This document shows positions 1-53,021 of a DNA stretch of 63,967 bases, piece by piece (position 1 is the first letter of the stretch; each line of letters opens with the position of its first letter). Position numbers and translations under genes: made by a program. Source of the DNA: Vitrella brassicaformis CCMP3155. Its lineage: Eukaryota; Protista; Chromerida. The notes beneath the pieces are model-generated. The model did no database searches, was not told the DNA's origin, and saw nothing but the letters and a program-made list of their open reading frames with translations. The DNA lies in the NCBI GenBank assembly GCA_001179505.1, contig CDMY01000313.1, positions 1-63,967 on the forward strand, written 5' to 3'.

Positions 1-1376
1 ATGTTTGTCATGGTGTTGTCTGTGTTCTCTTCTGCATGTTCGTCTGGGTCCTCTGTCGTTGTCTGTTCGCCCGTCAATGTTTCTTGGAACGTCTGTCTCA
101 CATGCACGCCGATTGGCCATGAAACACACCGTCTCGCACCTTGGGCTGTGACCGACCGACCGCCCGTACGAAACCTAAGCCATCCAAGCAGTTTACTGCT
201 GTAAGCAGACTCACAGCTGACAGAAAACAGTAATACCGTAACGATCACAGGCAATACCTTAGTAATCATCCTCTCACCTGACGCTGCTCTGGCTACTCAA
301 GAGGCTGGCTGTCCTGTCACCTCCAACGCTCTCTGGCTATTGATCTGATGACGAGGTTGCTTTGTATCGCCATGCTGTGTGTTTCTCACCCGAGTTCTGT
401 TCGCCGTTGTACGTGAGGGGCCTTCATGAGACCTCCGACGCTGCTCCTCCTTCACGCTGGGACTGATTTTGAAGGGGGGCTGGGGGCTGCATGCGCTTTT
501 CTGGCGTCTTTTCCGTTTTTGTGTTTCCGTTTTTTTCGGTCGATTTTCGGTCGATTTTTGCTCGGTCGATTGGCAACCCCGGAAGAACCGATCGGCCGAA
601 CACACGCAAAAAAAAGTCGCGTACAGCACTCCCCCAGCTGGTGCTTTTGGGGGGGTCGTGAAAACGTATTGCCATGGTTTACGAATGGCCGAAGTGGCCA
701 AGTAAGGAGCGTGTCCCCTTTGTGCCATAGATGGCTTTGCATGGCTGACCGATACGACACACATGCAGTGCAGCAGACACACAGGGAGAGGCAGCATAGC
801 ATCGATCAGGTCAGGCGGCCAGTCAGTCACCCGGCCAGCCACCCACAACACGGACAATGCAATGCAGCACCGCCAACCGACAGGAACCATCACCACATCA
901 AAAGTGATCAGAAAAAACACAGGGAGGAATCTGAGGAAAGCCGACGTGCATGTCACCCATTCGGCGGTGCATAAATGCCCATTCTGGTCACAGAGACCAG
1001 TGATTGAGTGAGTGTGGGACGAACGTCACAATGGCCACTCATTCAAACAATGGCCAATCACAGGGGCGGCAAAAAACCAGCAACGTGAGAGTCCGTCTTT
1101 TTCATGAAACACCGAGAAAAGGACACACACACGCACACCAGCCAGGGCACAGCCATTCTGGCGGGCGCATCAGAGAAAAAAAAGCCGAATGCCATGTGTG
1201 CAGTGGTCGGCATATCTCCCTAAGTAAGACCCATTCCCCCATCTCCCTCAGACATATAGAATGCCATAAGTCTTAGATCCGTCAGACGGCCCCACCTCTC
1301 CCTGGCTCTCTCCCTCCCTCAATCCTTCCCTCTATGCGTCTGCCATTCACTGGCCGGCAGCCTTTCCCTTGTGTTG

Positions 1377-4300
1377 TTATCTGCAATGCTTCGCCTCCAT
1401 CGCTCGGCGATGTCCAATAGCAGCCTGCTTGGCATCCTCATAGCCCAGCTCAGCGATTGAGAACGGCTTCTTCTTCTCTTTGCCGCCCTCCTGCCAGCCG
1501 GCCGTCCATGCGTTCGCCCTTTTCTCATAGTAGACGCCCTTGACCCCGCTCTGGTGCTTTGATAGCTTCCTCACCGGCAACCGTCCGGTGCGCTCCAGTT
1601 CACAACGATGCTCCTCCGCCAACGCCTGATAGATGGAAGCACACATATGAGACACTCAGAGGGAGAGGGCAAGAGGGGACGTTGTGCGCACCTTGGCTCT
1701 GTCGAAGCCATGCTCTTTGACGTAGAAGTCCATGTCCTTTCGCTTCGAGTCGCCCTTCTCGTACCACGATGCCCTCCAGGCCTGCCTCGCGTTGTACCAA
1801 CTAACTCCCACCACGTCAGACTGATGGTCTGCAGTTGGTACCACACATCAGCAATCGGGTTGCGTTGGATTTGCCTCTTGGTCTCCTCACCGGATTTGGT
1901 GACGACGGTCTTCCCCTTTGTGCTGGTCTTCTTGTCGGTGTCGGCGGCCCACTGGGGATTGGACGCATAAGTGGACGACCAGACATCACCGGCAGGCGCC
2001 GACGCACCATCCCTCTTGGCTGCCTTGGGCCTCCGTGGTGGCTGGGGAGATAATGAGCGGCTGCCGTCATCAGAGAGGCGGGCCGCCCGAGCCACGCTGC
2101 TCCTCTGGCGGGCACGTCGGCCCAGTGTCGCGTCGCCCTCTCGACTCATACGGGGGCGGGTCGGGAGGTGAGGAGCGGCGGGCGGGGCAGGGCGGGGACA
2201 GAGAGGGGAGTCCAACGGTGGGTCCAGCCTGGGCCCCTTGCTGCGGTTGTTGCCCCCGTGCTGCGGTTGTTGCCCCCGTGCAGATGAGTGCTGCGGTTGG
2301 GAAGCACACCAGGGACGCCGTCTTGCCCCTGCCCCTGCTGTGCTCGCTGCAGCCACGACAGATCGATGAGCATTGCCCGATCGCCCACACGCGACCGGTG
2401 GAGCGCATTGCGGTACTCGACAGCCTCACGGAAGGCCGTGAAGATGGCCGCGCGGCAGGCGCCGTAGCCGACAGGGAACTGACGCAGATCGACGGCCGTC
2501 GATGCGTCGCTGTCCCAAAAGTAAGCCTCATAACTGTAGTTGCTCCGCCACGAGATCCCGATACTGACACAGATATGACACACAGAGATGCACACGTGAC
2601 GTGAGAGCGTCATGCACTTGGTCCTGCTCACCCTCCTCTGTCTGATGCATGGAATTCGCCCGGCTGCTGGTCCCTCATCCACCGCACTAGCGCGCGAGCC
2701 AGCGCATCGCCCGTCAGTTCTGCCGCCACCTGACGGCCGGCTGGGCCGCACAGCTTGGGAGGGGGGCTGCGGTCAGCCGAGGCCACACGGCCGTTATGGC
2801 CTCTATGCCCATCGACAGAGCTGCTTGGCATGTGGCGCTCCTCTGGGTCGGTGCACCCTGACTGAATGACACACACCCAGACAGCCAGAAGAGGGCGTGT
2901 GGGAGGGCCTGCTGACCCAATCTGGCGTCTCAGTGCTGTCTGGCTCACCATTATTGCGGTGCGCTGCTGTCGATGCCTTGGCGTGGGGGAGGGGAAGTAG
3001 CCCGCTCCTCTCCTCTCTGGGATGCCGCGCCGCCCTCATGGCCTGGGCAGTCACTTGCCCATCAGACGGCACATCCACACCTGTCATCACACACACACAC
3101 ACACACCCCAATGGATGGCAGCCACTGAACGAACGAGTGAGACGCACCTGTTGGCATCCACGGAATCGCTCTCGTCTGGTGGCCGGCCACCGTCACTGTG
3201 ACGATCTCATACCGACCGCCACTCCCAGGATCGCTCGCACGCACACCCTCCAGCAAAACGGTCAGCGCGGCCATGTCAGACGTCGCGTCAAGCAGGTCGA
3301 TGTCACTGTCCGACTCGCCGACCGGCCGCCCATTGCTGTCCGTCGGTTGCGTCTCATCGGCGGGGCCGCTGTGATCCATCGCGCCCTTGCGTCGCCGCTT
3401 GCTGGTGCGGATCGGTGGACGACTGTCATCATCCAGCTCGAATGACGGGGGAGGGGGGGAGGCGGCCGGCCGATAGTCATAATGTCGTTTCTCCATCTTC
3501 CGTCTGTGACAGATGGCGGCCCGCTTGGCCCCCTCATAGCCCAACTTCCTCGCAGAAAAGTTCTTCTCTCTCTGTCTGCCGTCCTCCTGCCATGAAGCCA
3601 TCCATGAGTTGCTGGCCTTCTGATAGTAGACGCCCTTGACGCCGCTCTGGTGCTCCGATCGTGTCTTGACCGACGCCCGTCCGGTGCGCTCCATCTCACG
3701 ACGATGCTCCTCGGCCAACGCCTGACAGACGGAGGCACACACGTGAGACACTCAGAGAGAGACAGACGGGACGATTGGAGGCGTTATGCGCACCTTGGCT
3801 GTGTCGAAGCCATGGTCACTGACGTAGAAGTACTTGTGCGTCTCCTTCGTGTCGCCCTTCTCAACCCACGATGCCCTCCAGGCCTGCTTCACCTGTTGCC
3901 AACGAACACCCGCCACATCCGACTGATGCTCTGCAGTTGGCGGGACACACAAAGGTCAGTGACTGCGTTTGAATTCGCTTCTTGGGTTCCTCACCGGATT
4001 TGGTGATGACGGTCTTCCCCTTTGTGCTGGTCTTCTTGTCGGTGTCTGCAGCCCACTGGGGGTTAGACATACAGATGGACGACCAGACATCACCGGCAGG
4101 TGCCGACGCACCATCCCTCCTGGCTGCCTTGGGCCTCCAGCGTCGTGAGTGTGGAGATGACGACCGAGAGTCGACGGCCGCCACACTCGACTGGGGCTCG
4201 CGCCTGTGGGGAATCGGAGCCTTTCCGGCATCGGACGTTGCTGCTCCTGCAGATGGTGAATCCACACACAACAACCGGTTATTATCTTATACGCGGGTGG

Positions 4301-4469
4301 ACAGTGCGTCCGTACCTGATGCGTGTGGTCTCCGGCCTTCCGTCATGGCTTCCTTATGCATGGTCAGCTGCCCGGCGTCCAGATACGCCACCTCAGCCGA
4401 TGTGACCGTTTCGTTGGCTGCCTGGCCTCCGTCCGCTGCCGATGGTTGCTCAACGGTTGCCTGCTGCAT
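1377..4469 (-). CDS. ApiAP2-family transcription factor with five AP2 domains (one divergent); multi-exon; frame break near 2240-2280
   Basis: Hand-spliced with phase-consistent GT-AG introns from ATG 4469 (MQQATVEQ). AP2 motifs: HQSDVAGVRWQQVKQAWRASW...HGFDTAK|ALAEEHRR; HQSGVKGVYYQKASNSWMASW...LGYEGAKRAAICHRR; divergent GISWRSNYSYEAYFW...GYGACRAAIFTAFREAVEYRN; then a second pair ending LGYEDAKQAAIGHRRAMEAKHCR* at 1377. Could be two tandem genes instead of one. Confidence 0.85.
2239..2299. repeat. 20-bp tandem duplication (tgctgcggttgttgcccccg x2, plus a partial third copy) inside the AP2 coding region
   Basis: Exact copies at 2239-2258 and 2259-2278; partial copy at 2289-2299. Confidence 0.9.
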
Positions 4470-4807
4470 GGCCGTTCGCCCTGATAATGACTAAAGTGGC
4501 TGGCGCGTCGCTTCACAGGCTGGATGAGGGCTCCGCGCTCCTCCGAGCATCAGCTGCCGAGTGACTCGCACGCTGATCCGAGCTCAGCAATGCTGCAAGA
4601 TCAGCTCGTCGAGTTTGACGGTCTCGGTGAATCACAAGGGCGCCTGAACGTCGCAATCACAAGATCAGATCAGCTTGTTGGCAGAATTGATCGTTGGCTT
4701 CAAGCTCGCATATGGCACCTGCTGCTGAAGATTCATTGCGGAGTCGTTTTCGCACTTGGGAGGCATTGTGGTCACCATGCCCCGTTGATTCATCCCGCGA
4801 GCTGGCC

Positions 4808-7636
4808 ATGTCGGCAGCAACAGGCGGTTCGAAGAAGCGGAAGGCGAATGACGGTGATGCTGTTGACGCGGCAGGCCAGCCAGCTGATGACCACCACCCT
4901 CCCACACCTCAGATCGGCCGTCAGTCACTCGACAAGGCCATCGCCGCAGCCAGCGCCGCCCTCCTCGCCATCGAGAACCACGGGAACTCACTCTTTTGGA
5001 ATCACGAAATCACAGCATAGAAATCAGACCTTCTTGTCGTCACAGCGCACTTACTATTGAGAGTGAGAGGACGTCGTTTGGCACACGTAAAGAGTGGCCT
5101 TTGGCCGTGCTTTTGCGCCCCCGTTTGCTTCTCTGGAGTCACTGGTTGTCGAGATATGAATCAGTCCATGAACCTAAATCATGGAATCAACCGAAGAACG
5201 AAATCACCCCTCCTGTACGGGCCTAACGATTTCGATTTCTGATTCTGATTCAATGATTTCCCCTTGGGGTTTAGGGTTAGGGTTTAGGGTCTTATTCCGT
5301 GAAACCGCTCTCTCAAACCCTAGAGGTCAAATCAGAACCAAAATCACTTCGCCAGTGGGGGGTAACGATTTCGATTTCTGATTCCGTGATTCCAGGTGCC
5401 GGACAATAGAAATCAGCGCTGATTTCTATATGATCACTGTGTGATTTCGGATGCAGAATGGGTTCCCGTGGATCGAGAACGCCGCCAGGAGTGCCCGCCA
5501 GCAGCTGCAGACCAAAGCCGAGGCCATCAAACAGCTGATTGAGAACACGGGCGGCAAGTTGGAGCTGACGGGCGGCATCGATGGGGAGCCGGAGGTCAAT
5601 GTGGGCGGGCGGGTGTTGTGTGTGTCGCGCGAGGGGCTGATGATGGATCAGCTCCGCCGCACCTACTTCGCCCATCTGCTGCTGTACTGTGTGGACGCCC
5701 TGCCCCGCGATGAGGAGGGCCGGCCGTTCCTCGACGCAGATCCAAACTATGTCAAGTGGTAGGTCCAAGAAGAATGCGGGTTTGTCTGGTTTGTGTTCAT
5801 TGCGCTTTGTTTGCTGTCCTTTGTGTTATTCAGGTTGGTCAATGAGATAGCGTTGGTTGAGGGTGCTGACGCCTCAGGCGAGGAGTACGAGATCGAGTTG
5901 GACGACACACAGAAGGAGGACCCCACCTTCGCCTTTTACCACGAGCTGTTCCTCACCCAGACCACACTCGAGATCGACGTGCGATCAGAAGACACAGACA
6001 TGGACGCCAGAGAGGCGGCGGAGGGCAACAAGGAGGGCGGCGACTGCGGGGGGGGCGACAGGAAGGGGGCAGGGGATAGCAACGGGGAGGAGACTGCCGG
6101 CAGTCGGCTGCGTGAGTACGTGGATAGCTACAACGATGCGGTGACGGTGCTGGAGAAGGCGGCAGTGCATTTGGGCGGGTTCGGCAAGGCGATGGGGCCC
6201 TTCCTCCGAGCAGAGGACGGCGGCGCACACGAGGTGAAGACCGTGACCGTCCTGCGCAAGAAGGTGTCGACCACCGAGGCGACGCTGTCGCAGCTCGGCC
6301 CCGATAGCACTCTCTACAAACGATTCAGGTGAGAATGCACCCACGGCACACACATACACTGCCGCTGTGTGGACGCATTGTGTTCTTTCCTCTCCTGTGT
6401 GTGTGTGGGGTGTGTACAGTGGTGAGATTGTGCAGGGCGACGTACCCATTCGCCAGACATCCGTTGAGCACTTCACGAAGGTGACACACACGCACACACA
6501 CACACACACACACAGGAGTGAGAGAGAGAGAGAAGGAGGGCACACTGTAAGTCCTTCTGGCGGCCATTCAGGTGGTGGATTTTGCCCGAAGACAGAAGCT
6601 CGAGAGGCGACCCGGTGCCCTGGTCAAGAAGCCCACAGCCAAGCCAAAGTATATCGCTCAGCTGAAGGTATCGCTGATCCGTCCACACATGACTTCATCA
6701 AGGCGGCCATGAGCACTCAACCTGTGTGTGTGTGTGTGTGTGTGTGGAGAAGGATGTTGAAATGTATGGCCTCACGATGGAGGACGTGCAGCGGCCCCTC
6801 TCACCCATGCTCGACATCGAGGAGACGCGTGAGGTGCTGGCCATGATGGAGATACCCAACCCCTCAATCAAACTCCTCTACAGGTAAGCAGAGACAGCAA
6901 TCTGATCTCTTTGCGACACCATCAACTTATTACCCTTTTCTACTTTGCTCTCTGTCAGTTCGACGCGTGACGGTGGTGACTTCGTCACGATGGTGGACAA
7001 GGTGGGCGACGCGAGCAGTCTGCTGTTCCTCGTCAACCACGACGACACATACCGATTCGGCGCCTTCCTTGAGGGCCAACTCAAGCCGCCCACCGACCCC
7101 AAACAGACTAATGGTTACAGGTTGCCGCACTTCCTCATCTCGATCTCCGGTGCGTACGCGACACCCACGAAGGTGCTCATTCCCATGACCAGGCAGTTTG
7201 TGCACGTCGCCGGCCGCGACGCATCCATCAAGGGCATTAGGGACTCACGTGGCAAGGTGGGTGGAGGGTATACACAATTAGTGTCACTGCAGTGAATGGC
7301 ACTGGACCAACTGACTGGTTGTCACATGTCTTGTGTGCAGTTGTCTTTTGGCTGTGGGTATCTGCGGTTTGGGTGGGCCATCCCCGGCCCCTCGGATGAC
7401 GTGCGCAGCATGCATCATGGCGTCAAGAAGGACGACCTTCCCGATGGCTACATCGGCCAACGCAACGACAACGGCGACGGCATACTGGCTGGGGGCTGGG
7501 ACTTCACCGCAAAGGAGATCGCCATCTACCAGGTGAGGTACCGAGGGGAAGGCAGAGACACGACGAACGTAGATGAAGATGCACTGATGACTGACTAAAT
7601 GAATGCGTGTGTGCTCTGTAGGTCAAGTCGGCATGA
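4808..7636 (+). CDS. BTB/POZ-like + TLDc domain protein (paralogue 1); exon 1 interrupted by a transposon, possibly a pseudogene
   Basis: ATG 4808 MSAATGGSKKRK; BTB-like EVNVGGRVLCVSREGL...LPRDEEGRPFLDADPNY; TLDc LLYR|SSTRDGGDF...LFLVNHDDTYRFGAF...ISISG...FTAKEIAIYQ|VKSA* (stop 7634-7636). Introns phase-consistent. Confidence 0.85.
4978..5471. mobile_element. 494-bp non-autonomous TIR DNA transposon (MITE-like) with 8-bp target-site duplication
   Basis: TSD atcgagaa at 4970-4977 and 5472-5479. TIR ccacgggaactcactc versus reverse complement of the right end ccacgggaacccattc (14/16). Removing the element and one TSD restores the frame ...LLAIEN|AARSARQQ. No transposase ORF. Confidence 0.9.
5267..5289 (+). 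repeat. Short interstitial telomeric-type repeat (TTTAGGG-TTAGGG-TTTAGGG) inside the MITE
   Basis: gggtttagggttagggtttaggg, with an inverted copy aaacccta at 5315-5322. Confidence 0.8.
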
Positions 7637-8070
7637 GTGAAGGGACAGCCACTGTGGCAGCAGCACCGGAAGACATAGCTTTGCACAGAAATGACAGACC
7701 GATTTCCGTGTGGGCGTGGATGGATGGATGGACCTTCATGGCTGTATGTCTCAATTTTGATTCACGACCCTGCAGTCCGTTGACACACACACCAGGCAAC
7801 CTGGTGAGTCTGTGGATAGCGTCAGTGACCGTCTCAACAACATGCACACGCCACGCCTCCGCCCCGCCACCCTGTCAGACCCTCTCCATCCATCCATCCA
7901 TCCATGTCTGTCCGTCCGTCCGTCCGTCTGTCTGTCTGTCAGTCTGTCCCCACACGCCAGCATCACCACGCCCTCACATCTGGATCCCAGACCGAACAGC
8001 AGTTGATGGCGAACTCTTCTGCAGGCACATAGGATGACCCCCAGCTGCCTGAATGCCGCCCACGATGAGC

Positions 8071-10140
8071 TCAGGCCGCCTCGACCCAGCGCGACGGCCC
8101 ATGCTTGGCTGCTGGTGGACCACTGCCGTGACGCCACGTCATGCCCGCCACGCCCTGCACTGCAGCAGCGGACCGCACTCCTGAGGATGTCCGCCCATGT
8201 TCATGGCTCGACGACTTGGGAGGCCTCCGCTGTGGTCGGCTTGTGCGGCATGTGGGGGGACAGGACTGACAGGCTGACGTCGCGTCACAGAAAGTAGATG
8301 GAAGGGGGCGGCCGGGGGCGTCAATGGTGTGGGGGTGCCTGGAGAGGGAGGGAGAGGGACAAATGCAACACACACACAGGTGGGATGGATGCATCCGCGT
8401 GTGTCGGTGTGCTATGCTGACCTGAAGGTGCGTTGCAGCAGGATGGCGCATTGGCCACCTACATTCACACCGCGGTGAAGAACTGGGCGCCGACCTTTCC
8501 TGAACACGCAACACATGGCAGCCACAATACATGAGAGGGAAGGCACGGTGTTATTCTGAGTCGTCCATTTCTCGCCCACCCGTACCAGAGTGCACTATTC
8601 GCGAGCCACATGTTGCCCATCTTGGCATGCCCCTCGTCGCTTCCACCCAAGATCATGCCGATGTGTGGGAGTCGACAGCGCCCGGACCACATTAATCGTC
8701 TGGCATGGCGATCCTCTCCCACGCTGCCACGGTCCTGTCCACCCTCAGCCGCCACACGTCGCCTACCACCCGCCCGCCGCTTCCAACTCCTCCACTCAGG
8801 AAATCCTCGTTCTGGCCGCTGCTGTAGCTGCCGACCTGACACATGGCGTGTCTGTAACCAGAGGGGGGGTGGTGGAAGTCTGCCTTTCTTCTCTGCCGAC
8901 CTGCATTGTTTTCAGCTGCCGTGGCGCTTCTCGAATACGACTTTCTTGGCGTCATACATCAGCAGACCCCTCGACCTTGCCAACTGCCTTGGACCAAACA
9001 CACACGGCCTTGAGGGGTCGGCGAGGGCGACAGCCACACGATACAGCTGCAAATGGGAGGCATCATCCAGCCCCTGCGTGAGGATAGCAAGCAGTGTCTG
9101 CAGATGGAGGTGTGTCGTCTCTCTCTCTCTCTCTCTCTCTTTGTGCCTTCACTCACCTGTTGGCCGATGTCCGTCCATGTCAACAGTGGCAGATCCATCC
9201 CCTCGTTCCTCTTCCCATCATCATGCGGCCGCCTCTCTCCAGCCTCACCGACGAGCAGCTTCTCCCCCACAACTCGCCGAAAAGTCGCCAGGAAGCGGTC
9301 GATCTGAACCGTGTTCTGCTCCACCGTCCTTGGCAATGCCCACAAGCTGAGGCAAGGACTCGGTCGTCAAACAAACGGGACGGCGCGTGTAGCCGCAGAG
9401 CGCCGCGGACGGCGATGACCTTGCGCTTTGCAAAAGAGTTGGCGCCCGACTGCTTGAGGCCGCAATGGTGAGCCATAGAGAGAGATGAGAGTCTGTGACA
9501 CTCGATGTGAAGGAGATGAGCTGATGGTCGTCGGCTGGTGACGCTGGTGGCTGGGACTGGAAGTCGTCCTTTGCCGCCTCGTATAAGGCACTCCCTCGGC
9601 TTCATGGCGCCCGAAAGGGAGCCGAATGACTCAGTGCCGTCGCAGCTGGTGTCATCATCGGTCACGTCGTTGGGTGAGTGGCTGACGAAGAGCAGCCGAC
9701 GAAGAGTGGCCGACGCGGGATGGGGCGGCCGGGGCCGTCGAGGGTGTGGATGCGCCTGGAGGAGTGGGGCAACAAGGGGGGCGGCATCAGGGGGGTCTTC
9801 TGGGTCTTCCCGTAAGGTGAGTGGGTGGCCGCTAGATGATGAAACAGTCGGTCGAAGAGCTGCCTGTGCACCCTGGCAAACACACGCAGACGGGGAGGGA
9901 AGGCATGATACTGACCGCTTGTGGCACTGTGATGGCGTGATGTGTGCATTCTGACCTATAGCTGAGCTGCATCTTGACGAGATGGTTGTGTACGCCCTGC
10001 AGGAAGCAAAGAGATAAGGAAGGGATAGCACATACATGCCCGTGAGTGTTTGTCTGCGTGTGGAATACCTGCAGGCGCGTTGGGGTTGATGCCAGTGACA
10101 AGCAAAGGTACTCAATTGTTCTGCCAAAATAGACGCACAT
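8071..10140 (-). pseudogene. Probable degenerate multi-exon gene of unknown function
   Basis: Several exon-like blocks bounded by splice sites (GVHNHLVKMQLSYR|VHRQLFDRLFHHL; TVEQNTVQIDRFLATFRRVVGEKLL...IGQQ|GLDDASHLQLYRVAVALADPSRP). No single frame can be assembled without stops or frameshifts, and no domain was recognised. Confidence 0.3.
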
Positions 10141-13947: not shown

Positions 13948-15928
13948 ATGCTCGAGTTGATTGGCGGATGCGACACCATCGATGGCGACTTCGATGCGTC
14001 AATCGAGCGGCTCACGATGGCCAAGAGGGCGCTGACGGATGAGATCTCGCGGCTTGTTGCTTCGCGAGGCGGCGTGTCGCACCTTGCCGAGACCATTGGC
14101 GAGATGCTCGTCAATGCAGGTGTGCAGGGGAGGGGCCACGTGGGGTGTCCCAGTGATGATGTGATTGTCTGTGTTGGTCGTCGTGTGTGTATCGAACGAT
14201 CAGGTGGCGTGGTGTTCCCTGTTTCCCGTCGTGCGCTTCTTCTCCCCTGCATGAAGCATCGCTACATCTCGGTCCTGCTGATGCACTTCTCTGACGGCCT
14301 CCCGCGAGATGCCGACGGCCATGTCTATCTGGAGACCTCACCTGCATACTTTGAGGCTTTGCTGGACGAGCTGACACTCTACGAGACTGGCCGCACCAAC
14401 ACCGTTGACCTCCCGCCGTCCAAGGCGGCCGACCCGGCTTACAGCGAGTACCACTCCCTGTTCATGCGCGAGCTGCCATCCTTCTCAGCTCCGACACACA
14501 GCAGCCGCGGTGCCGCCACGACCAAGGCGGTCGATGGCGCATGCGACGAGAAGGCCCTAGCGGATGTCATCCAGACGTCGCTGAGCGACCTGGAAAAGGT
14601 CATGAAGAGGCTCACGCGGCGCAGGGAGGAGGTGGTCCGATTCCTCTCGGCCATGGAGCCCTTCATGAAGGGCCAAGACGACACTGGAGACGACCTGGCG
14701 GTGCTGAGTCTGAACGTCCTCGGCCGGCAGGTCGTCATCCAGAGGCGCACGCTGTTGCGATTGGGAGCCGACCATCCCCTGCTGACACGATTCTCAAAGT
14801 GGGCACACGCACAAAGGGCAGACGGGGCAGCACAGCAGGTCACGTTGGGTGCCTTCGGGTGTCTATGTGTGGTTGTGCAGTACTCCGCCTCGCTGGGGCG
14901 ATCGCCGTGTGCGTCAGACCCCCACCAAGCACTTCGTCAACACAGTCGAGTTCGCTCGGCGATGCGCCTGCATGCCCAAGGACCAGCTCATCCGGCCCCC
15001 GCTGATGGACGAGAGCGAGCGTGAGCTCTTCAAAGAAGATTTGGCGATGTATGGGCTCACTTACTCGCCAATCCTGGACCTGCCGGCCGGCCAGGAGTGG
15101 GTCATGCAGTCGACAGAGGAGTGGGTGGCCGTCCTCGACCTAATGGACAGGCCCACATGCAGACCATCGCTGCTCTTCAAGTGGGCTGGGGACTCACGAA
15201 GGCTCCACGATCTTGAATGGAAGCGGCTTTCCCTTGTTTGTCAGGTCTGGCAGTGACGGTGGTGACTTCGGCACGCTGCTGCAGAAGGTGGGCGACGCGA
15301 GCGGTCTGCTGTTCCTCGTCAGCCACAACGATACACACCGATTCGGCGCTTTCGTCGACGGACAACTCAAGCCGCCCAGCACACGGACCAATAAATACAA
15401 GGTGCCCTCCTTCCTCATTTCGATCAGCGGGGCATACTCTCGGCCGACCAAGGTGCCCATCCCCGAGGCCAGACAGGTGGTCGAGGTCGCCAGCCGCGAC
15501 GCGTTCATGAAAGCTAGAAATGCGGACTCACGTGGCAAGGTGTTAAGAGGGGAGGGGGGGAAGAACAAAGCAGCACAAACAGAAGGACACGGCTATTACA
15601 TTACTGCGGACAGTTGTATTTGAGTGACGGGTACCTGTGGCTTGCGTGGGCCACCCCCGGCCCGGCAGATGACGTCCGAAGCATGCATCAGTGGGTCAAG
15701 AAGGAGGACTTGCCCGACAAGGACTACCTCGGCCAATTCAACGACCACAACGACGAATGCACACTGGCGGGAGACTGGTACTTCACCGCCAAGGAGATGG
15801 AGATATGGCACATCGAGACCGCCAGGGGTGGTTGGTTTGAAGAGGCAGCACCGCACGCTGCTGTCGAGGTCGGGTCGAGGAAGCCGAAGGGTTTCATCAG
15901 CTGGCTGTGGCGGCGGGGAGATGAATAA
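13948..15928 (+). CDS. BTB/POZ-like + TLDc domain protein (paralogue 2)
   Basis: MLVNAG|GVVFPVSRRALL...HFSDGLPRDADGHVYLETSPAYF; TLDc LLFK|SGSDGGDFGTLLQKVGDASGLLFLVSHNDTHRFGAF...FTAKEMEIWHI; stop at 15928. Confidence 0.9.
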
Positions 15929-50948: not shown

Positions 50949-53021
50949 ATGTCGGCTGCAGCAGCAGTAGCTGACGGGCGGAAAAAGCGAAAGAACCACC
51001 ACAATGGAGTAGCTGATGAGTCCGTCGCCCCATCCCGGTTGCATGGCGTGACGAGCGGCCGCGAGGACGCTGATGTGCTGCTCAAGGAGATCTCTGGATG
51101 CATGGACGGCCTGCGAGGAGCGGTCAAGACGGCAGCAGCCGCGGCAGAAGGCAAAACAGAGAAGCTGGCGGGGGAGATCAAGCAGATGATCACGTCGAAC
51201 GGCGGCACGGTTTATCCGCAGCAGACGAGCGGCAAGCTGAAGCTCAATGTGGGCGGCACCGTTTTGTCCATCCCGGTGTCGTCCCTCCTGCAGCCCAAGG
51301 TGAAGAGGACCTTCCTCTCCACCCTGCTGCTCCACTTCACGGACGCGCTGCCCAAGGACACCAACAAGGTGCCCTACCTCGAGATGCACCCGCCCTACTT
51401 CCGCTGGCTGCGCAACCAGCTGGCGCTGCTCGAGAGCCCCCACATCAGCGAGATAAAACTCCTCCCTCCCAAGAGCGACGACCCATCCCATGCCGAGTAC
51501 CACTCTCTGTTCATGCAGAAGCTGGGCAGCGACATCGAGGAGCAGCCACAGGCGCCGAGCACGTCGGCTGCAGCAGCTGCTGCTGCAGCGGCGGGAGGGA
51601 ATGGCGAGATGGCCGATGCGGGTGGAGGCGGGTCGGATGAGCTGATTCTGTTGGACGACTCCACGTCTGAGGAGGAGAGCGACGAGGGCGGGGAGGGTGG
51701 GGCGAGGGAGGCGTTTAGGGAGATAGACCAGTACGTGAGGCGGTACAAGGGCCTCGTCAGTGCACTGCGGAAGCAGAAGGAGAAGATGGAGGCGTTCCTG
51801 TCGGCGATGCGGCCGTTCGTCAAGGGGGAGAGTAGCGACGAGGATGTGGAGGTGATGACGCTGAGCGTCAACGACGAGGATGTGTCGGTCCTCCGCCGCA
51901 CCGTCGCGCCACTCGGAGCCGGCCATGCCCTCGTCAAACGCTACGACAAGTAGGAAGGCATGGGAGGGAAGGACCGAACTAAAGAAACATATGTACATGT
52001 GTGTGTATCCTTGTATGTGCTGCTGCAGGGACAAGTGGCCCGATCAGGATGTGCATCAGACGTCCGACGAATTCCTCCAACTCATCGTCGACTTCGCGCG
52101 CCGGCTGACATGCATACCAGACGGGCGATTTGTGCATCCTCCGGTCGTGGCGCAACACGACAAGGAGATATTTGCTGTGGAGCTCGGCATGTACGGCCTC
52201 AGTACGGTGCCGACCGTGGTGGGCGGGGCGGCGGAGGCCTCCACGGTCATCAGGACGGCTGACGAGTGGCTGCAGGTGATGAAGATGACGAACAAGAAGA
52301 TCGCCGTGCCTCCATCGCTGCTATACAAGTGAGACCGACTGCTGACACAGAGACGGGCAGAACGGACGACAAGCCATGAATCTAATTGCGTCATCCACGC
52401 AGGGGCAGCCGCGACACGTATGTGTTCCCCAAGATGCTCGAGTGTGTCGAGAGCAAGAGCGGCCTGCTCTTCGCCCTCCGAGATGGCGACACTCACCGAT
52501 TCGGCTGCTTCATCGACGGCCCCCTCACGCCGCCTGACGACCCCACAGATTTCCACAAGTACAAGGTGCCCGTCTTCTTCTACTCGCTCAGCGGCGCGTA
52601 TGATGCGCCGACCAAGATCGAGCCGCCCGAGGGGAGGCAGAGGGCAACTTGGCAGAGGGTGACGGTCGCCGGCACACAGGGGGCGGTGAAGGACTGTAAG
52701 GGCGAGCCGACTGCGAACGTGAGCATCGCTTGCGGTCGTCTCTGGCTGGGGTATGCCGATCCTGGTCCTGCGGCCGACCTCAGCAGCTGCCAGCAGGGAA
52801 TCGAAAAGAAGCATCTACTGGCAGCAGGGGAATACAGGGGGAAGGTCAAGCATGGCGATGGGCCACTCGCCCAGCAGCAAGACTTCACGTGCAGCGAGAT
52901 GGAAGTATGGCACATCAAGGAGGTAAGGCGCGCGCCAGCAGGACGCATGCCATGGTGGCTGTCATGTGGAGCCCTCTATGGATGTGCCTGTGCATATGTT
53001 TTGTAGGTGGTGAGTGGCTGA
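50949..53021 (+). CDS. BTB/POZ-like + TLDc domain protein (paralogue 3)
   Basis: KLKLNVGGTVLSIP...LLLHFTDALPKDTNKVPYLEMHPPYFRWL; TLDc LLYK|GSRD...LLFALRDGDTHRFGCF...FYSLSGAY...FTCSEMEVWHIKE|VVSG*. Confidence 0.92.

Follow-up and report, generated by a model that had tools for sequence, protein, structure and literature searches.

What has split the first exon of a TLDc-domain gene in the chromerid Vitrella brassicaformis, and by what route did the intervening DNA arrive there? The question is raised by a stretch of 63,967 nucleotides of strain CCMP3155 (GenBank assembly GCA_001179505.1, contig CDMY01000313.1, positions 1 to 63,967 of the forward strand). This whole stretch is referred to here as the window, and coordinates given without a prefix are window positions. 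The interrupting element is 494 bp in length and lies between two copies of the sequence ATCGAGAA. The initial annotation of the window had taken it for a DNA transposon, a proposal that is supported by copies with different 8-bp duplications elsewhere in the genome, by paralogues without the insert and by the non-coding nature of the element. The best explanation, with a probability of about 0.88, is that positions 4978-5471 are a copy of a low-copy, non-autonomous class II transposon family of V. brassicaformis with terminal inverted repeats (TIRs).

The Interrupted Exon and Its Paralogues

The insertion falls inside codon 57 (Asn) of exon 1. The element is bounded by a perfect 8-bp duplication of ATCGAGAA (4970-4977 and 5472-5479), and both this duplication and the length of the element had been described correctly at the outset. 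The TIRs match at 10 of 10 positions over CCACGGGAAC, at 14 of 16 across 16 bp and at 15 of 17 across 17 bp. Inverted repeats of 16 bp had been claimed; the repeats themselves are present, but without a full 16-bp match, so they are to be regarded as imperfect. Within the window, the 10-mer CCACGGGAAC occurs at the two element ends only, against an expectation of 0.18 occurrences. The TIRs are kept in all three full-length copies of the element that were found in the genome. The G+C content is 47% in the element as opposed to 60% in the flanks.

With the element in place, the reading frame of exon 1 stays open for 70 amino acids and ends at a TAG (5018-5020), 13 codons into the element. A normal protein therefore cannot come from the unprocessed transcript. 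The removal of positions 4978-5479 by script yields an open exon 1 of 150 codons, which runs from the ATG at 4808 to the donor of intron 1, an ordinary GT..AG intron (5756-5833). The claim that exact removal restores the open reading frame (ORF) was thus borne out.

The two halves of exon 1 were searched separately (4808-4975, 56 amino acids; 5481-5756, 92 amino acids) against the assembly of V. brassicaformis CCMP3155, which comprises 72,700,666 bases in 1064 contigs and was the genome used throughout. The upstream half gave 15 matches and the downstream half 89, with 12 of the latter at 76-100% identity. In close paralogues the two matches stand exactly one codon apart, e.g., C553:244788-244952 followed by 244956-245228. 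This C553 paralogue is the closest one, and at the DNA level the left flank of the element aligns to position 1499 of its locus and the right flank, together with ATCGAGAA, from position 1492. The two alignments overlap by exactly 8 bp.

At least seven paralogues have an uninterrupted exon 1 at the insertion point. The target is a single ATCGAGAA in five of seven uninterrupted paralogues and a one-base variant in the other two (ATGGAGAA and ATCAAGAA). By these alignments, the paralogues have an undisturbed target, and the insertion lies between stretches of conserved coding sequence. Paralogues sharing the insert had been named among the observations that would count against a transposon, and all seven lack it.

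Further Copies in the Genome

A DNA search of the whole genome, in which copy counts are lower bounds, revealed two further full-length copies, C676:18301-18795 and C738:121166-121661. Each is 92% identical to the window copy. The C676 copy is flanked on both sides by TTGATTCT, read in element orientation, and the C738 copy by GCGACGAG, with one mutation in the right end of the latter (CCCGTAG). All three full copies have different perfect 8-bp duplications that abut the same inverted ends, and the copies with other duplications for which the initial annotation had proposed a search were thereby found. Since the flanks of the three are unrelated to one another, a larger segmental duplication holding them is unlikely. 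The insertion points at C676 and C738 have no convincing ORF across them and lie in apparently non-coding DNA; the window copy alone among the three lies in a gene.

The C676 and C738 copies are 98.8% identical to each other, with 6 substitutions and 1 indel, whereas some 40 positions separate the window copy from each of them. The family thus falls into two sublineages, and the 98.8% identity indicates that one of them (C676/C738) has been mobile recently.

The genome was also scanned with 17-mers of the element ends, allowing up to 2 mismatches. Paired ends occur at the three full-copy loci only, and solo ends occur at C293, C591, C686, C204 and C430. There are at least five fragments or solo ends besides the three full copies, and the solo ends lead into unrelated DNA, an assembly gap or a retrotransposon. 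Small internal fragments of the element are found at C392 and C305, alone in unrelated DNA.

Fragments of this kind can also be viewed as a dispersed satellite or a recombination product, in which case the flanking repeats would have arisen by chance or through microhomology-mediated repair. The small internal pieces that stand alone in unrelated DNA would suit such an origin, as would the direct repeats of more than 8 bp at two fragments (12 bp at C591 and about 15 bp at C293). However, exactly 8 bp is duplicated, without mismatch, next to the same inverted ends in three of the three full copies, and the single-copy target of the paralogues fits integration at a staggered cut precisely. For the full copies, this pattern of duplications and empty sites refutes a satellite or recombination origin, which is scarcely credible overall.

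Several of the partial copies have features of their own. At C591 (L039, 2246-2330), a solo element end of 18 bp precedes some 50 bp of unrelated DNA, and the unit is flanked by the 12-bp direct repeat GCAGAGATGGCC, within which the neighbouring gene has its start codon. The unit may be what is left of an insertion that was aborted or that lost its interior. The C293 derivative (L009, 1480-1735) is a rearranged unit of about 220 bp in which one end is well preserved and an internal segment is inverted, and its flanking direct repeat of about 15 bp, CACGAATGGCAGCCC, exceeds the 8-bp duplication of the family. The C430 fragment adjoins the pol ORFs of a gypsy-type retrotransposon (L047, C430:18300-28299, 3302-6610, minus strand). 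These encode protease, reverse transcriptase and integrase-like products, and the region looks like a transposon-rich patch. The C204 solo end runs into an assembly gap, in a neighbourhood with a GH97 glycoside hydrolase gene only. Near this gene (L040, C204:109000-118999), there are two direct repeats (5459-6565 and 7639-8734) of 1.1 kb each, 94% identical and 2.2 kb apart.

Look-alike 17-mers at C753, C916, C1010 and C304 were rejected as chance matches, as they sit inside another repeat with sequence conserved on both sides and have no RAATCA motif. Metagenome scans for the element yielded nothing except a chance match of 21 bp to a contig of bacterial appearance.

Internal Anatomy of the Element

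The motif RAATCA or its complement is present 17 times in the element, against 1.2 expected; the maximum among 2000 first-order simulations was 7 copies. The motifs are clustered under both ends (Table 1), and a 24-bp palindrome occupies 5406-5429 in the inverted motif set beneath the right end. The telomere-type run in mid-element may have been acquired from a telomere or may serve as a site for protein binding. Both this run and the inverted AAACCCTA are partly retained in the other copies, as well as in the fragments at C293 and C392. The element shows a strong fold-back when single-stranded (z=-5.4), and an Rfam search of it gave no match over threshold, with a miRNA look-alike below threshold only. 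The longest internal ORFs are of 76, 66 and 61 amino acids, and a Pfam search of the internal ORFs gave no match at E<=1. The absence of coding capacity that had been claimed for the element therefore holds.

Table 1. Positions of the element, of its parts and of the surrounding exons in the window.
Feature	Position	Strand	Remarks
Exon 1, upstream part	4808-4977	+	ATG at 4808; 15 paralogous matches, up to 93% amino acid identity
Left target-site duplication, ATCGAGAA	4970-4977	.	Once in 5 of 7 paralogues, one-base variant in the other 2
Non-autonomous TIR element, 494 bp	4978-5471	+	2 further full copies
Left TIR, CCACGGGAACTCACTCT	4978-4994	+	
Left subterminal cluster, three RAATCA motifs	4999-5026	+	
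Premature in-frame stop TAG, exon 1 read into the element	5018-5020	+	ORF 4694-5020
Internal direct duplication, 45 bp	5201-5245; second copy 5341-5384	+	Repeat pairs 93% and 71%
Telomere-like run TTTAGGG-TTAGGG-TTTAGGG	5270-5289	+	Inverted AAACCCTA at 5315-5322
Right subterminal cluster: 24-bp palindrome ATAGAAATCAGC/GCTGATTTCTAT and inverted TGATTY motif	5406-5447	.	
ATG in the right end of the element, in frame with downstream exon 1	5451-5453	+	ORF 5451-5762
Right TIR, CCACGGGAACCCATTCT on the minus strand	5455-5471	-	
Right target-site duplication, ATCGAGAA	5472-5479	.	
Exon 1, downstream part	5480-5755	+	89 paralogous matches; intron 1 next
Later exons	5834-7538	+	tblastn with paralogue proteins P0001 and P0004; all open

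Proposed Mode of Insertion

The proposed mechanism is a cut-and-paste insertion. A DDE-type transposase supplied in trans would recognize the TIRs of 10-17 bp and probably also the RAATCA motifs that are clustered under both ends. The transposase would excise the element and then integrate it at cuts staggered by 8 bp. In the window, these cuts would have been made at ATCGAGAA inside codon 57, in exon 1 of a TLDc-domain paralogue, and the repair of the gaps would have duplicated the 8 bp.

As about 1.6 kb of downstream coding sequence is undamaged, it is presumed that the insertion is a young one or else that some bypass keeps the gene working. A recent insertion had been claimed for this locus; it is plausible, but it does not stand as a dating, with an identity of just 92% between the window copy and the other two. 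A possible start for a bypass of the interrupted part is the in-frame ATG at 5451, and a protein database search with the ORF at 5451-5759 gave no match.

A bypass could also operate on the transcript. The element would then be an introner, removed from the RNA either by cryptic canonical sites or by a repeat-guided, non-canonical excision, and the gene would be functional. In Amoebophrya, introner elements with a layout of direct and inverted repeats are described as being removed non-canonically (PMC7789003). The element matches these in having both kinds of repeat at its boundaries and no transposase. In addition, about seven other exons of the host gene are undamaged, and an acceptor-like TTTCGGATGCAG ends at 5456.

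All candidate splice sites were listed: on the donor side each GT or GC that precedes the stop, and on the acceptor side each AG within the open portion of the downstream frame. The listing tells against an introner: GT is absent between positions 4925 and 5020, the 5′ border of the element offers neither a GT nor a GC donor, and none of the canonical GT-AG or GC-AG pairs removes exactly 502 bp. The GT-AG options that would keep the frame use poor donors (GTTGAC at 4862 and GTCACT at 4924), and conserved residues would be lost with them. Furthermore, the gene's own intron 1 is of the ordinary GT..AG kind, and two of the three full copies of the element are in apparently non-coding DNA. Because the splice signals are unsuitable and the other two copies are without a convincing ORF, the element does not appear to be built as an introner, and this explanation is very improbable.

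The Host Gene and Its Family

After exon 1, the host gene continues in exons at about 5834-6326, 6415-6483, 6572-6667, 6750-6884, 6957-7258 and 7345-7535. By tblastn with P0001 and P0004, every one of them is collinear with the paralogues and free of stops and frameshifts; a tiny final exon escaped detection. The gene had been described as encoding a BTB-TLDc protein. The TLDc part of this description stands, with PF07534 at 6954-7259 scoring 24.6 bits against a cut-off of 24.5 (29.2 bits in the paralogue P0001). The BTB part is a tentative label, as no Pfam match to BTB was obtained in the host gene even at E<=10. The one match in its favour, a weak one (E=0.047), was obtained with a profile of seven paralogues and is to the BTB region of Plasmodium Kelch13 (4yy8). 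The N-terminal domain of the family is not recognized by Pfam.

The family is very large, with 89 matches to the exon 1 piece and 71 TLDc matches genome-wide. Its members are often clustered, as at C242, C306, C326, C488 and C553, and weaker members are present in the window itself (14200-14352 and 51135-51401).

In a family of this size, the host copy may already have been a dead or redundant paralogue, and the insertion would then be a neutral event in a pseudogene as opposed to a fresh knockout. Besides the size of the family, the truncation of some paralogues (P0008, 243 amino acids) is in keeping with this view. Both the window gene and a paralogue at 107 kb on the same scaffold are also absent among the annotated proteins retrieved with a 381-amino acid query. 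The state of the rest of the gene speaks differently, as its approximately 1.6 kb of downstream coding sequence is without a stop or frameshift and aligns end to end with full-length paralogues. A host copy that was dead or redundant beforehand is unlikely, although it retains an appreciable share of the probability.

The paralogue on the same scaffold lies about 100 kb downstream (L057, C313:105807-109082, 826-1971, minus strand). Its intron 1 is open in frame, which gives a read-through ORF of 381 amino acids. A protein search with this ORF returned 9 family proteins, none of which comes from the window gene, and the L057 paralogue is absent among the annotated proteins matched by the query.

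Two JGI contigs, P0002 (1562 nt) and P0004 (1784 nt), are intron-free, transcript-like members of the host gene family. In both, stretches identical to the window gene are combined with stretches of other paralogues. Such mosaics could stem from chimeric assembly, from a different strain or from gene conversion within the family. P0004 matches the window gene exactly in exons 6-7. It is uninformative on the insertion site because it begins downstream of the insertion and differs in exons 1, 2 and 5.

Transposase and Superfamily

Target-site duplications of 8 bp are known for the hAT, P, Merlin (8-9 bp), MULE (8-10 bp), Zisupton/KDZ and Novosib superfamilies, and the terminal consensus of hAT elements is YARNG. 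Seven Pfam families of transposase domains were searched for in six frames over the whole genome; Novosib, which is without a Pfam model, fell outside this search. No six-frame match was found for the hAT domains PF05699 (Dimer_Tnp_hAT) and PF14372 (RNase-H-like), for MULE (PF10551), for Merlin/IS1595 (PF12762), for P (PF21787 and PF12017) or for KDZ/Zisupton (PF18758). The TLDc control matched 71 times in the same search, so these negatives carry some weight; the method could miss a transposase gene that is intron-rich, diverged or unassembled.

The missing domains weigh against a transposon, and several other points do so as well. No autonomous partner, with a transposase ORF between the same TIRs as had been envisaged, was found by the whole-element search or the 17-mer end scan of the genome. 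The empty sites are those of paralogues and not of alternative alleles. Divergence between the window copy and the other two full copies amounts to 8%. Finally, three full copies are few for a typical MITE (miniature inverted-repeat transposable element) and short of the high copy number that is typical of MITEs in the strict sense.

For the transposon family, which is still the preferred explanation, a hAT-like superfamily is the leading guess, held tentatively and at somewhat less than even odds. It is suggested by the 8-bp duplication, the short repeats and the subterminal motifs, and made doubtful by the misfit of the termini and the lack of a hAT domain in the genome. The published repeat annotation of Vitrella likewise assigns 0 bp to hAT and no more than 14 kb to “other transposase” (PMC4501334, supplementary file 2).

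Two bolder versions may be put forward as a pair, and it is quite improbable that either holds. In one, the family would be moved by an unrecognized or very divergent transposase, which would combine 8-bp duplications, CCACGGG ends and recent activity in a close free-living relative of the Apicomplexa. In the other, the exonic copy would be removed from the RNA in the manner of Amoebophrya, by a repeat-guided, non-canonical route such as that proposed for the introners of that genus.

Significance and Comparison with Known Systems

In the genome of Vitrella, transposable elements have been reported to total 1.5 Mb, of which non-autonomous class II elements make up 64 kb (PMC4501334, supplementary file 2). 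These REPET counts are totals only, with no family, termini or insertion sites (PMC4501334). A full-text literature search yielded no publication that deals with MITEs or introners in Vitrella. The family described here is a new, small and previously undescribed one of a known transposon type, and the event in the window is a fairly ordinary mobile-element insertion. The interest that had been attached to a mobile family in a chromerid is weaker than first stated, with class II elements already counted in Vitrella (PMC4501334), and the overall picture is unchanged by an addition to what was reported in bulk.

What the locus does offer is a clean, documented case, with ends, duplication and paralogous empty sites, of a DNA transposon recently mobile in a chromerid. 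The chromerids are a free-living sister lineage of the largely transposon-poor Apicomplexa. A gene of the large TLDc family is seen interrupted by a DNA transposon, and the termini defined here can be used for finding the missing transposase in better assemblies.

Compared with the non-autonomous class II elements counted by REPET in Vitrella (PMC4501334), the element comes from the same genome and belongs to the same broad class, and its family may be part of the 64 kb. In relation to the introners of Micromonas, Aureococcus, dinoflagellates and Amoebophrya, it is alike in being a MITE-like unit with direct and inverted repeats and in lying within the protein-coding sequence of a myzozoan relative. 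It is unlike them in having no splice signals at or near its ends and a premature stop in the read-through frame. Its copies number three, as opposed to hundreds, and two of the three are outside genes.

With the P, Merlin, MULE and Zisupton/KDZ elements, the likeness is in the length of the target duplication, whereas no matching transposase domain is present in the genome. A resemblance in form is seen to the hAT MITEs, i.e., the non-autonomous elements of the Ac/Ds type. The element departs from hAT in its CCACG ends, which stand in place of YARNG, and in the absence of a hAT transposase domain (PF05699, PF14372) from the Vitrella genome. Its targets fit the hAT pattern nTnnnnAn at four of six half-sites, which is only a hint given three sites and a post hoc comparison. 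The element and the hAT MITEs are alike in the 8-bp target duplication of every copy, the short TIRs of 10-17 bp, the many short subterminal motif repeats in both orientations, and a length of a few hundred bp without an ORF.

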